A DNA stretch of 64,000 nt. Origin: Octopus sinensis (Eukaryota). This document shows, piece by piece, positions 3,431-12,716 of this stretch (the first letter of the stretch is position 1; every line of letters begins with the position of its first letter). The notes beneath the pieces are model-generated. The model ran no database searches and was not told where the DNA came from. It saw nothing but the letters and a program-made list of their open reading frames with translations. The stretch lies in assembly GCF_006345805.1 (NCBI RefSeq), contig NC_043013.1, forward strand, positions 6,510,001 to 6,574,000, in the 5' to 3' direction. The position numbers and the translations under genes were made by a program.

Positions 3431-4817
3431 TTAATGTTGGCGAAACCCGTTCATCTCTTTTTCTATTAGAATATCGTTTATAGGCTTCATCCAAATCGTG
3501 AAATGCCTCAAGAGATGCGAAGATTTGACAATTTCCATTCCGTGGATGAGGTGGGTCTTTTTGGTAACATTACCAAATACTTTTGCTACAAAATGTAGAT
3601 GATTGACAGTATAGGTTCTTCTGGGTAAAGCCAGTCGAACGTATTCAAAAGGGTGAGTGTGTTTCGACCCGTCTGGAGATTCACCAAACATTATATTACC
3701 GATTTCTCCGCATCGAATTCCACCTTCAATATATACGGCACAAGTAAGAGACCATGCAGGATATTTATCGAATTCTAGATGCGGAAACGCTTCATTTGCC
3801 TTCACATAAACTGCGTGTGCACCGACCGGTTTAAAGACCGGAATGTTATTGTCCTCCAAGAAATCAGCCAACAACTTTGCTTGATAAATTCTTGACCGAA
3901 GGTAATTTTCGTTCATGGCTTCAGAAATTCCTACAGTGCATGCAGCAAGATTTGCCCCAGTTATTCCACCAAATGTTGAATAACCACTTTGGTATTCGAC
4001 TACATCAAAGATTTCTTGGGCCCATTTATCGTCGTTGAAAGCCAAAAATCCACCTTCGTTGCTTATACCATCCTTCTTAAGAGACATAGTTGCTCCATCG
4101 AAATGAGAAAACATTTCATGTGCAATATCTATGATGGTGTGCTTTGAATATTTCTCGTGTAAGGTCTTGATAAAATAAGCATTTTCAACGAAACGACACG
4201 CATCCATGAAAACCGGGATATTATTTGTTCTACATAACTTCGTTATTACTTCTATATTTTCCATACTTACTGGAGCTCCAGCTACAACATTATTGGTGCA
4301 GGTAATTATTACAAGATGAATCCTCGATCCAAATTTATCTAGCGATTCCCTGAATTTTTCCACATCGATATCTCCCATAAACTTAGAAGAGGGGGTTGCT
4401 AAGTCTATCCCCATTGCACCAGATGATTCGACGTGTGCACGTGTTGTATCAAACAATGAATTGCTCAGTACAACGCTGTTTTTATTCAGTAACAGTTTTG
4501 CTACCAATCCTTCTGCCCCTCTGCCTTGATGAACAGGGAATACATGTTTGAATTGCGTAATATGTCTGATGGTGCGTACAAACTGTACGACGTATTCCGA
4601 GTTAATGGTTGAATGGCCAGCGCTTATCATGGCGGACCACTGAGCTGCGCTTTGACTCCCAGTGCCAGAATCTGTCAGCAGATCAATGAATATATCATCA
4701 GATTTCAAAAGGAATGGATTGTAATGGGCTTTCTTCAGGCAATTCACGCGGTCTTCTCTTGAGATCAGCTTGGTGGGATAAAAAACCTTGATTTTGTAAG
4801 GTTCCATAGCGTGGAGA
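3431..4817 (-). CDS. tnaA-like: Tryptophanase/tyrosine phenol-lyase family PLP enzyme, paralogue A (single large coding exon; ORF 3431-4807, 458 aa from MEPYKI)
   Basis: Family motifs EPYKIK, YNPFLL, FIDLLTDSGT, HQGRGAE, NSLFDTTR, MDACRFVENAYFIK, MSLKKDG (PLP Lys codon 4073-4075), IRCGEIG, VRLALPRRTYT, LRHFT. Polypyrimidine+CAG acceptor (tttttttttctttctctttgccag) ends at 4818; in-exon ATG has Kozak context gctATGG. Confidence 0.95.
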
Positions 4818-4877
4818 CTGGCAAAGAGAAAGAAAAAAAAAAGGAAATTAAGTTTAAAAAACTGTGTACAAGCTTGT

Positions 4878-6460
4878 CATGTGTGTGTGTGTGTGTGTTT
4901 GTGTGTGTGTGTTTGTGTTTGTGTGTTGTGTGTGTGTGTGTGTGTGTGTTTGTGTGTGTGTGTTTGTGTGTGTGTTTGTGTGTGTGTGTTTGTGTGTGTG
5001 TGTTTGTGTGTTGTGTGTGTGTGTGTGTGTGTGTTTGTGTGTGTGTTTGTGTGTGTGTGGTGTGTGTTGTGTGTGTGTGTGTTGTTGTGTGTGTGTGTTT
5101 GTGTTGTGTGTGTTTTGTGTGTGTGTGTGTGTTTTGTGTGTGTGGTGCGTGTGTTTGTGTGTGTGTGTTTGTGTGTGTGTTTGTGTGTTGTGTGTGTGTG
5201 TGTGTGTGTGTTTTGTGTGTGTGTGTTTGTGTGTGTGTTGTGTGTGTGTGAGTGTGTTTTGTGTGCGTGTGTTTGTGTGTGTGTGTTTGTGTGTGTGTGT
5301 TTGTGTGTTTGTGTGTGTGTGTTTGTGTGTTTGTGTGTGTGTGTGTTTGTGGTGTGTTTGTGGTGTTTGTGTGTGTGTGTTTGTGTGTTGTGTGTTTGTG
5401 TGTGTGTATTTGTGTGTGTGTTTGTGTGTGTATGTGTTTGTGGTGTGTGTGTCTGTGTGTTTTGTGTGGTGTGTTTTTGTGTGTGTGTATTTGTGTATGT
5501 TTGTGTGTGTTGTTGTGTGTGTGTTGTTTGTGGTGTTTGTGTGTGTGTGTGGTTTGTGTGTTTTGTGTTGTGTGTGTTTGTGTGTGTTTTGTGTGTGTGT
5601 GAGTGTGTTTTGTGTGTGTGTGCGTGTGTTTGTGTGTGTGTGTTTGTGTGTGTGTTGTGTGTTGTGTGTGTGTGTGTGTGTGTTTTGTGTGTGTGTGTTT
5701 GTGTGTGTGTTTGGTGTGTGTGTGAGTGTGTTTGTGTGCGTGTGTTTGTGTGTGTGTGTTTGTGTGTGTGTTTGTGTGTTTGTGTGTGTGTTTTGTGTGT
5801 TTGTGTGTGTGTGTGGTTGTGGTGTGTTTTTGTGTGTTTGTGTGTGTGTTTTGTGTGTGTGTGTGTTTGTGTGTGTGTATTTGTGTGTGTGTGTTTGTAT
5901 GTGTTTTGTGTGTGTGTGTCTGTGTGGTTTGTGTGTGTGTGTTTGTGTGTGTGTATTTGTGTATGTTTGTGTGTGTTGTTGTGTGTGTGTTGTTTGTGGT
6001 GTTTGTGTGTGTGTGTGGTTTGTGTGTTTTGTGTTGTGTGTGTTTGTGTGTGTGTTTGTGTGTGTGTGTGTTTGTGTGTGTGTTTGTGTGTGTGTGTGTG
6101 TTTGAGTGTGTGTGGTGTTTGTGTGAGTGTGTTTTGTGTGTGTGGTGTGTTTTCGTGTTGTGTGTGTGTGTGTGTGTGTTTGTGTGTGTGTGTTTGTGTG
6201 TGTGTGTGTGTGTTTGTGTGTGTTTGTGTGTGTTTGTGTGTGTGTGTGTGTTTGTGTGTGTGTGTGTGTGTTTGTGCGTGTGTGCGTTTTTGTGTGTGTG
6301 TGTTTGTGTGTGTGTGTGTGTTTGTGTGTTTGTGTGTGTGTGTTTGCGTGTTTGTGTGTTTGTGTGTGTGTGTGTGTGTGTGTTTGTGTGTGTGTGTGTA
6401 TGTGTTTGTGTGTGTGTGTGTGTGTGTGTGTGTACTTGTGTGTGCGTGTACTTGTCTGTG
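4878..6460. repeat. About 1.6-kb degenerate (GT)n/(GTTT)n microsatellite mosaic in the intron upstream of paralogue A
   Basis: Direct inspection; source of all the His/Thr- and Cys/Val-repeat ORFs. Confidence 0.97.
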
Positions 6461-10209: not shown

Positions 10210-10269
10210 GAGTCTGACGAGTCGCTTATAGAGCTAAGCGCTTTATAGGTGCGAAACCAATGGCCACTC
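10210..10269 (+). ncRNA. Type I hammerhead ribozyme motif (U16.1 mutated to C in this copy)
   Basis: gagt CTGACGA g[12-bp stem II]c GAAA cc aat gg cc actc. Stem I is gagt/actc; the inverted partial copy at 10084-10155 retains the GTC cleavage triplet. Confidence 0.65.
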
Positions 10270-11290
10270 TCTGAACGGCCATACCTATCAACCTTCTACG
10301 CACACGCACACACACACACACACACACATACACACACACACGCACACACATACACACACATACACACACATACACACACACACACATACACACACACACA
10401 CAATTAATATAATCAGCTAGGTGCAATATCATACCATAAAGGAAAATTCCATAATTTTAATAATAATTATAACCTAGAAGGTTTTTCTTCTTCTCATGCT
10501 GCCACTTGGTTTGATCGTTAAATAACGGTCATATCCTTATCTATATAAAAATTTATACATATTCACTTCGTCGCTATATTCACCGCGGTGGTATTTTGAC
10601 CATATATCACATGGGTTCTATTTTCGAATAGGGCAGCCCCGCGTTTTCCCTTTATAGTATTTTGTCGTCTCATTTTCAATGTGACAAAGGCATGTCATTA
10701 TTTTTAAAAGGCTAAATACCATTAGCATAATAAATGATAAATATTTTATCACAACGTCTTCCAAAATTAGAAATTACTTCCGTGGAATTATTATTCTTTT
10801 TCTTAAAGAGTTGATAAAGCAATAGTAAAAATCACGAGAAAAATATCTTTGAGTTTCCAAATACATTTTATTTCCTTGTTTGTTATTATAATATACTAAC
10901 ACGATGTTTTAGTTGAAAAGATTTTGTAAAAGCAATCAATATTTAAGAATGTAATGGCCAAATATTTTTTGTTAGAAGGAGATAGAGCTCGATCAATAGG
11001 CAGTTATATATATATTATATATATATAATATATATATATTATATATATATAATATATATATATATATATATATATATATATATATATAGTATATATATGT
11101 ATATAATATATATATATATATATATATCCTAGATTAGCCTTAATTGAACTGGGACTAACTGCATATTATCTGTTCTTTTTAAGGCATTCGAGACTACATT
11201 ATCGGATTATCTCATCCATTTTAAGAGGAGTGTAATTCAAATGAGAGGTTGGTATTCCTAAGCAGGCGTTGAGTGGTTAATACTGGTCTG

Positions 11291-12716
11291 CTACATGTTT
11301 TTAAAGAAGTGGATGTGATCAGAATTTTGCACTGGTAGAAGATGGACATCTCCATAGTCCATCGAACTGAGTGGTACCATCGATGTTTTAATATGTTTTA
11401 TTTTACATTCAGGGGAATCAACAATTTTCATTCCAGAAATAATTTTATGTGAAATCAGCTGCGAGAAAACGTAGGCGACATAAAGAAAATGACATGTCGT
11501 ATATATAAAACGAGGCACCTCAAGTTTGATCAGTTCTCGGCCTTTTAGTGGATGGTCATCGGGTAAGCTTTGGGTTGCATGTGTAATTTGACCAAACTCT
11601 GCGCATCGAATACCCCCGATTATATATGCAGCACAAGCTAAAGACCAGGCAGGATAAAACTTTCGACTAAGTTGTGGAAAAGCTTTTTCGGCGTCAATGA
11701 AGATGGTGTTACAACCAATAGGTTCTACAATTGGGACTCCAAATTCCTTCAAGGATTTTTTGAAATATGCTAATTGTTTTTCTCTATAATCTTGGAGCTG
11801 TTCATCCAATGCACTGCGCATGCCTTCTGCTACTATTTCCATGTCTCGGCCAGCCATTCCACCGTAAGTGATGAAACCTGCTTTAAAGGTTATAACATTG
11901 CCCAGTTCTCGAGTCATTTCATCGTCTCGAAGGCAAATGACGCTCCCTATCTCACTTCTTCCGTCTCTTTTAGCAGAAAGGATGCAGCCATCGAAATATG
12001 AGAACATTTCCTGAGATATTTCAACCAATGATTTATTAAAATAGTTTTCTTCGTACATCTTTGTGCGCCAGCAATTCTCACCATACATGCTGCTTTCGAT
12101 ATAGACGGGAATCGAATGTTCTCGACAGAGATCGGAAACTGCTTTCATGTTGGACATACTAACCGGCTGGCCACCAAGATTCTTTGATGGCACATTCATG
12201 ATAACGAAAGAAATTTTTTCTTTATCATTTTGTTTCAGGATATTTCTGAATGCTTTAATATCTAAATTTCCTCCGAAATTCTCATCTGACCAATCCACCA
12301 TAGAAATCGGTTCCGCCTTAATATGCTTTAGATGATTTTCAAGAGTGTAAGTAAACGTATTTCCAATGACTCTGTCTCCAGCTTTTGCGAGATAAGAAGA
12401 GACTATCTCTTCGCTAGTACGTTTAGAAAAAACAGGTAATATATTTTCAAAACCAGAAATGTAGGTGGCGTTGTCCTTCAAAATTTCGAAACTACTTGAT
12501 CCAGCATAGCTTTCATCACCCATCCATAATCTTGAATTTTGTTTAAGACTCAAACCATTAGTACCAGCGTCTGTGAGGAAATCAATCATAACATCTTCAG
12601 GATGTATTTTAAAGACGTTGTAATCAGTTTTCTCGAGGGCAGTCAATCTGTCGTTACGAGTATTGATCTTTATGTTTTCTACGATATGTATTTTAAATGG
12701 TTCGATAAAATCAGAA
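11291..12716 (-). CDS. Tryptophanase/TPL family paralogue B, predicted pseudoenzyme subunit (single large coding exon; needs an upstream exon for its start codon)
   Basis: Uninterrupted frame from DFIEPFKIHIVE (upstream of the called ORF start) through IDFLTDAGT, MGDESYAGS, GGQPVSMSNM, SAKRDG, GFITYGGMAGRDME, IRCAEFG, VPRFIYT to TAG at 11291. Acceptor aacttttcgtttcctttcag ends at 12717. No stops or frameshifts in about 475 codons. Confidence 0.92.

Follow-up and report, generated by a model that had tools for sequence, protein, structure and literature searches.

How can an enzyme whose active sites are shared between neighbouring subunits be built from two polypeptides, neither of which carries a complete site? 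This question is raised by a 64,000-nucleotide (nt) stretch of the Octopus sinensis genome (NCBI RefSeq assembly GCF_006345805.1, contig NC_043013.1, positions 6,510,001 to 6,574,000; hereafter the window, whose first letter is position 1 of all coordinates below). On its minus strand lie two coding blocks of the tryptophanase family, here named A (3431-4817) and B (11291-12716). A first-pass annotation had described them as two tandem paralogues with reciprocal loss of active-site halves and had proposed an obligate heteromer. Our best reading, which we regard as highly probable, is that the locus encodes the O. sinensis tryptophan indole-lyase (TIL) and that this enzyme would assemble and act as an obligate heteromer of A and B in which each dimer has a single composite site.

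Complementary active-site residues in blocks A and B

Both blocks belong to the same enzyme family. They match Pfam Beta_elim_lyase (PF01212) with 182.5 bits (1.4e-53) for A and 136.5 bits (1.5e-39) for B, at a cut-off of 27 bits, and are 31% identical to each other. In a phmmer search of the Protein Data Bank (PDB), A matched tyrosine phenol-lyase (TPL) at 3e-100 and tryptophanase at 2.5e-99. A and B are the only copies of the family in the whole 2.72-Gb assembly of 13,516 contigs. AlphaFold2 modelling gave a predicted local distance difference test score of 89.9 and a predicted template modelling (TM) score of 0.88 for A, and 89.3 and 0.89 for B. Foldseek returned TPL and tryptophanase chains as the best matches of both models (TM 0.87-0.94; query-normalised up to 0.94 for A and up to 0.88 for B), so that both blocks are predicted to adopt the fold-type-I pyridoxal phosphate (PLP) fold of these enzymes. 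Within their catalytic dimer, enzymes of this fold build every site from the pocket of one subunit and a loop of its neighbour.

Residues are given in TPL numbering, which was obtained from a HMMER alignment of A to Citrobacter freundii TPL (2ycp) and carried to the other sequences via multiple alignments. Of the two key catalytic residues, K257 corresponds to K270 and Y71 to Y74 in E. coli numbering. The pocket of A is canonical at the Schiff-base Lys (K257; codon AAG, 4075-4073) and at D214, R217, N185, F123 and Q98-G99-R100. Among the residues supplied to the neighbour, A has lost Asp68, Glu69, Tyr71 and Phe288, with Thr at Y71 (ACC, 4609-4607) and His at E69 (CAT, 4615-4613). Block B keeps Asp68, Glu69 (GAA, 12514-12512), Tyr71 (TAT, 12508-12506), Phe288 and Tyr291, and its pocket carries K257R (AGA, 11968-11966), D214E, R217M, N185K, F123T, Q98S and G99K. 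According to PMC10170061, Tyr71 of TPL is the general-acid catalyst, and Lys257 forms the Schiff base and acts as the C-alpha base. Thus, neither polypeptide alone has both the pocket set and the Tyr71/Glu69 set, whereas the A+B pair does. A codon-by-codon check bore out every codon position, residue and motif quoted in the first-pass annotation. Its list of pocket losses in B was correct as far as it went; G99K, an Asp-to-Tyr change at the T124 position, N262E, R404K (R404 being the Arg that binds the substrate carboxylate) and F449I have to be added.

Positions 124, 381 and 448 are specificity sites, at which TPL has Thr, Arg and Phe and at which Asp, Ile and His form the TIL signature. Block A carries this signature, its residues being shared by 19-20 of the 20 bacterial homologues compared; B has Tyr, Phe and His. 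Arg381 and Thr124 of TPL are also treated in PMC10170061. The annotation had framed the residues after TPL. The Asp, Ile and His of A rule out a TPL identity, and the predicted enzyme is of the TIL type (EC 4.1.99.1).

Conservation of the reciprocal pattern in cephalopods

We compared five A-type and six B-type cephalopod sequences at 19 pocket positions and 6 neighbour-supplied positions; a chiton, a bivalve, two cnidarians and 20 bacteria served as the canonical set (n = 24). Database searches had recovered A-type sequences from Octopus bimaculoides (P0002, 91%), Argonauta hians (P0006, partial) and decapod-like sources (P0003, P0004 and P0005; 51-58%), and B-type sequences from O. bimaculoides (P0123, 95%), another octopus (P0124, 88%) and decapod-like sources (P0125, P0239 and P0240; ~46-48%). 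Canonical residues filled 94 of 95 pocket cells in the A clade versus 33 of 108 in the B clade (Fisher test, 5e-28). For the neighbour-supplied positions the relation was inverted, with 4/30 canonical cells in A and 36/36 in B (2e-14). The 24 non-cephalopod sequences were canonical at every compared column, bar one column at 22/24. The reciprocity between A and B is thus far beyond chance, and the complementary paralogues with disabling substitutions are present in both the octopus and the squid lineages, showing that the pattern read by the annotation from one species is conserved in other cephalopods.

The two clades differ in how their lost positions look. In A, the replacements vary by lineage (E69 to H, F or V; Y71 to T, S, G or N; F288 to Y, S, W or L), as expected under released constraint. 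The substitutions Y71T and E69H, listed earlier as losses of A, stand; Y291F, listed with them, is found in octopus only, Tyr being kept in two of the three decapod A sequences. Within its pocket, A retains Arg404 in 5/5 sequences and Phe449 in 4/5. In B, G99K, F123T, N185K, D214E, C216S, R217M, K257R and R404K are identical in all six sequences, which indicates that they were fixed before the octopod/decapod split and have been held since. A sequencing artefact as the source of K257R is ruled out by its presence in six independent B sequences. The empty PLP pocket of B seems to be kept in a specific new state instead of decaying freely; perhaps Lys and Arg side chains fill the cofactor site.

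Duplication history and selection

In a maximum-likelihood tree, the A clade and the B clade were each recovered with 100/100 support. A, B and the chiton sequence grouped at 97/91, A and B at 92/56, and the sampled bacteria lay beyond a 98/96 branch. This tree fits a history in which a canonical molluscan gene duplicated along the cephalopod stem lineage, the support for the A+B sister relation being moderate. In the decapod genomic copies of A (L005) and B (L013), the splice acceptor lies at a matching position and phase, indicating that the intron is older than the duplication.

Pairwise comparison with O. bimaculoides by the Nei-Gojobori method yielded ratios of nonsynonymous to synonymous divergence (dN/dS) of 0.248 for A (synonymous divergence dS 0.178, 456 codons) and 0.205 for B (dS 0.110, 474 codons). 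Both blocks are under purifying selection. The Lys-less B is constrained at least as strongly as A and does not evolve neutrally; neutral evolution of B would have spoken against the annotation's proposal. The dS values of A and B differ, though the blocks are only 6.5 kb apart.

A putative single transcription unit with two alternative last exons

The annotation had treated both open reading frames (ORFs) as intact. This holds for A, which has an open frame of 458 codons from its own ATG (3431-4807). The frame of B (11291-12715, 474 codons) is open as well, and it has no in-frame ATG 5' of the EPFKI arm: the ATC codon for Ile replaces the Met of A, and on the 5' side the frame runs into a polypyrimidine tract followed by an AG at 12718-12717. 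Block B alone is thus not a complete ORF and needs an upstream exon, which we locate at 20791-20775. This exon, ATGGACTTCTCTGACCT, consists of 17 nt that encode M D F S D plus 2 nt, and the intron that follows is in phase 2. It is the sole MDFSDL-coding site in the window. Directly 3' of it lies the donor GTAAGTAA (20774-20767), and 59 nt 5' of its ATG a TATAAAA box (20844-20850) probably serves as promoter.

Two acceptors could receive this exon. The proximal one, tttcctttcAG (AG at 12718-12717), precedes block B, which would be an alternative last exon (11291-12716) encoding residues 6-480 of isoform X1 and ending with the stop codon at 11293-11291. A candidate poly(A) signal AATAAA, identified by consensus match, follows 419 nt past the stop (10867-10872). 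The distal acceptor, ctttgccAG (AG at 4819-4818), lies ten nt 5' of the ATG of A. Block A (3431-4817) would accordingly be the distal alternative last exon, which encodes residues 6-467 of isoform X2, contains an internal Met at 4807 and ends with the stop codon at 3433-3431; its own candidate AATAAA, likewise a consensus match, is located at 2904-2909, 522 nt past the stop. All these signals are on the minus strand.

Joining exon 1 to either block keeps the frame. With B, it gives a protein of 480 amino acids (aa) starting MDFSDL-SDFIEPFK, and with A one of 467 aa starting MDFSDL-LHA-MEPYK. These are the exact lengths of the two isoforms of one O. sinensis gene in RefSeq. The body of A is identical in 458/458 residues to residues 10-467 of XP_029647098.2 ('tryptophanase-like isoform X2'), and the body of B in 474/474 to residues 7-480 of XP_036366181.1 ('tyrosine phenol-lyase-like isoform X1'). 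In O. bimaculoides (L003), the corresponding pair has consecutive accessions (XP_014791032 and XP_014791033; isoforms X1 and X2), both gene models begin at one shared coordinate, exon 1 differs by a single silent substitution (GAC to GAT), and TATA box and donor are conserved as well. Together, the shared exon 1, the conserved signals and the isoform models point to a single transcription unit that ends in either of two alternative last exons, a whole subunit being encoded by each. On these sequence grounds, the A/B locus is best read as one such unit and not as two independent genes in tandem as annotated.

Exon 1 would be joined either to the proximal B or to the distal A, in the second case bypassing B together with its poly(A) site. 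If this is true, the choice of splice and polyadenylation sites would set the co-expression of the subunits and the A:B ratio, and the shared promoter and first exon would be an unusual coupling of two-subunit expression in an animal. The coupling by alternative last exons may be octopus-specific, and it is the only point of this work that may be new. That one TATA promoter and a 17-nt exon 1 make both subunits of an obligate heteromer in octopods, and that this has not yet been described, we propose tentatively and with rather more doubt than confidence.

An intronic (CA)n-rich tract of ~1.65 kb (4880-6500, minus strand) ends ~60 nt before the A acceptor. Its AC/CA dinucleotide fraction is 0.73-0.87 per 100 nt; the tract is impure, with A 928, C 695, G 67 and T 61 counted over 4850-6600. 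Intronic CA repeats are known modulators of splicing, and this one might shift exon choice between B and A. In O. bimaculoides, a shorter CA-rich stretch is present at the corresponding place, beside an assembly gap of 964 N.

First exons in decapods were compared with that of octopus. Decapod A transcripts (L006 and L009) start MDFNEM-LKA-MEPFK and MNFDEL-LES-MEPFK, like octopus exon 1. In contrast to this A type, decapod B transcripts (L004 and L014) start MDSANA-IYL-NEPYK and MKELIKNVAD-MHLL-NEPY. This suggests that decapod B has a first exon of its own and that the use of one A-type exon by both blocks arose newly in octopods, although the compared transcripts may differ in species. It further suggests that octopus B lost its own first exon and was captured by the transcription unit of A. 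In the 10 kb that precede the decapod genomic B (L013), no matches were found to the A-type exon 1 or to either of the decapod B-type first exons. In ERZ21867824, the one decapod assembly with both genes, A and B lie on separate contigs, and the A contig offers 357 nt of upstream sequence only. This ENA assembly is filed as a metagenome; its cephalopod host contigs with the A-type and B-type genes (L005 and L013) measure 16.8 and 116.7 kb. Its A product (P0003, 478 aa) has a false C-terminal extension, which results from a TGA called as Trp.

The proposed composite active site

We propose that the cephalopod stem lineage inherited a canonical molluscan gene, that this gene duplicated there and that the two copies then degenerated complementarily. 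A would bind PLP through its Schiff-base Lys, with an Asp for the pyridine nitrogen and the Q-G-R phosphate cradle, and it would also provide the Arg404-equivalent carboxylate binder, along with the Asp, Ile and His specific for indole. A partner should receive from it neither the general-acid Tyr nor the K+-binding Glu nor the Phe288 loop. B, predicted to be unable to bind PLP or substrate, would supply precisely these partner-directed residues. An A:B dimer would thereby contain one complete site, made of the A pocket and Asp68, Glu69, Tyr71, Phe288 and Tyr291 of B, and a second site that is dead on both counts; an (AB)2 tetramer would have two live sites rather than four. In an A2 dimer, both sites would lack the acid Tyr and the K+ Glu, and in a B2 dimer neither could bind PLP.

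That B keeps 36/36 neighbour-supplied residues argues for such an arrangement, because these residues have a role only if B pairs with a PLP-bearing partner. In TPL, Gly52 and Asn262 of one subunit form the K+ site together with Glu69 of the other, so that only the site composed of the A pocket and the B loop would keep a K+ site. The central claim of the annotation, that no homo-oligomer has a complete site and that the A:B pair rebuilds one, is thus supported, at the level of sequence, by conservation, duplication history, selection and the intact partner-directed set of B. The locus would be a natural case of a homo-oligomeric enzyme becoming an obligate hetero-oligomer by complementary loss at a shared interface site. 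Such a split would halve the number of active sites and lock both genes in place.

Earlier reports and related systems

The reference list of PMC12980246 includes Yuasa 2023 (J Mol Evol 91:912, PMID 38007709), a study of cephalopod TILs. A full-text literature search for the cephalopod result returned this reference-list entry only. That study reportedly describes TIL-alpha and TIL-beta, which arose by a duplication before the divergence of octopus and squid and which each carry disruptive substitutions. Each protein was reportedly inactive alone, the co-expressed pair reportedly formed a heterotetramer whose TIL activity was low, and mutagenesis reportedly pointed to the alpha/beta heterodimer as the active unit. 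We take A and B of the window to be almost certainly this pair. The split cephalopod tryptophanase has therefore already been described and is not new, and the annotation's remark that no animal heteromeric tryptophanase-type enzyme is known is outdated. Its deduction of the split from raw sequence alone was nevertheless correct and non-trivial. As a published case, the split opens no new question; the regulatory coupling may still add something.

A 2021 survey lists tnaA in O. bimaculoides and O. vulgaris and contains no analysis of a residue split (PMC8537960). Public names for the A/B pair are inconsistent between species (tryptophanase, tryptophanase 1, tyrosine phenol-lyase-like). The annotation of O. 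vulgaris contains a B-type 'tyrosine phenol-lyase' of 497 aa and a truncated A-type 'tryptophanase-like isoform X2' of 258 aa.

Several known systems resemble the proposed heteromer in part. Judging by its title, the study of Phillips, Johnson and Kamath (Biochemistry 2002) found that hybrid dimers of Y74F and H463F Escherichia coli TIL rescue activity with L-Trp, which implies that the Tyr and the pocket His sit on different subunits of one site. As in these hybrids, where a neighbour-Tyr defect and a pocket defect are mixed and a site is restored, each cephalopod subunit would compensate for the other. Unlike the laboratory single mutants, the split seen here is natural; it affects ~12 positions of the pocket and 4-6 of the loop and has become fixed throughout cephalopods. 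The bacterial TnaA and TPL structures (PDB 2c44, 1ax4, 2ez1 and 2ycp) share the fold (TM 0.87-0.94) and the Pfam family with A and B, A being 33-39% identical to them, and the A pocket together with the B loop makes up their canonical residue set. They are homotetramers with four complete sites, whereas no single octopus polypeptide has one. Serine palmitoyltransferase LCB1/LCB2 (SPTLC1/SPTLC2) is also a fold-type-I PLP enzyme, in which one paralogue lacks the PLP Lys and yet completes the interface site of its partner. By analogy, the Lys-less B would complete the dimer-interface site of A. LCB1/LCB2 differs in belonging to the alpha-oxoamine synthase family, in being membrane-bound and in being encoded by separate genes.

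Alternative explanations

The conserved pattern could also arise if the two proteins had separate roles, A being a homo-oligomeric PLP beta-lyase for S-substituted cysteines and good leaving groups and B a non-catalytic protein such as a ligand binder or regulator. A retains the entire PLP and carboxylate pocket, and the pocket replacements of B, identical in 6/6 sequences, look like a constrained new state and not like free decay. Moreover, TPL Y71F is known to remain active on substrates with good leaving groups, so that an A homo-oligomer could keep some beta-lyase chemistry without B. This explanation fails, however, to account for the 36/36 neighbour-supplied residues of B while those of A drift freely. 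It also offers no reason for the presence of the indole-specific Asp and His in 5/5 A sequences, where the third such position holds Ile or a comparable hydrophobic residue, or for one octopus promoter serving both. In addition, the A-type and B-type proteins were reportedly each inactive alone. We therefore consider separate roles improbable.

It is harder still to see B, or both blocks, as a decaying pseudogene or the leftover of a horizontally acquired bacterial gene, with the reciprocity a coincidence. The missing ATG of B, its long branch and the intronless bodies of both blocks, 40-45% like bacterial genes, would suit this idea. Against it, six B and five A sequences, octopod as well as decapod, have open frames, dN/dS is 0.21 for B and 0.25 for A, decapods yield spliced cDNA-like contigs of both types, the acceptor position is common to A and B in both lineages, and the metazoan sequences cluster apart from the sampled bacteria. 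Such decay is the least probable of the explanations weighed here. Recent bacterial transfer or contamination in particular is ruled out by the spliceosomal intron at a conserved position, the surrounding octopus repeats and the metazoan grouping. Only slightly less remote is a heteromer that forms but has a main job other than Trp degradation, for instance a reverse or beta-replacement reaction or another indole or aryl amino acid, Trp lysis being a side reaction of low activity. Octopus A has Gly at the second-shell TPL M379 position versus Val in 18/20 bacteria, and 16 otherwise invariant columns are altered in all A sequences. The eukaryotic tryptophanases assayed so far are poorly active, according to PMC12980246. 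On the other side, octopus A keeps the substrate contacts Asp 124, Ile 381 and His 448, with the retention of Phe449 and Arg404 among A sequences given above, and nothing in the present data points to a different substrate.

The obligate TIL heteromer thus remains the preferred explanation, and several points weigh against it. Besides the possible beta-lyase chemistry of A alone, the sister relation of A and B is supported at just 92/56 and comes with a long B stem. The splicing of exon 1 to both bodies is based on gene models and splice signals. Residues, conservation, purifying selection, fold, splice signals and isoform identity come directly from the data, whereas we infer assembly and activity, which Yuasa 2023 is reported to have shown, and the usage of promoter and splice sites.

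Other features of the window

An ORF scan of the window revealed no other evident cellular gene beyond A, B and exon 1. The remainder is filled by retroelement fragments (RVT_1, zf-RVT), a Mos1/mariner-type transposase fragment (HTH_48, Transposase_1) and many microsatellites. Repeat or transposon fragments were located at 14300-16500 and 31065-31748 on the plus strand and at 18012-18545, 21945-22994, 56318-57406, 58387-60631 and 61337-61756 on the minus strand. Two of them, 14300-16500 and 18012-18545, sit in the intron between exon 1 and block B.

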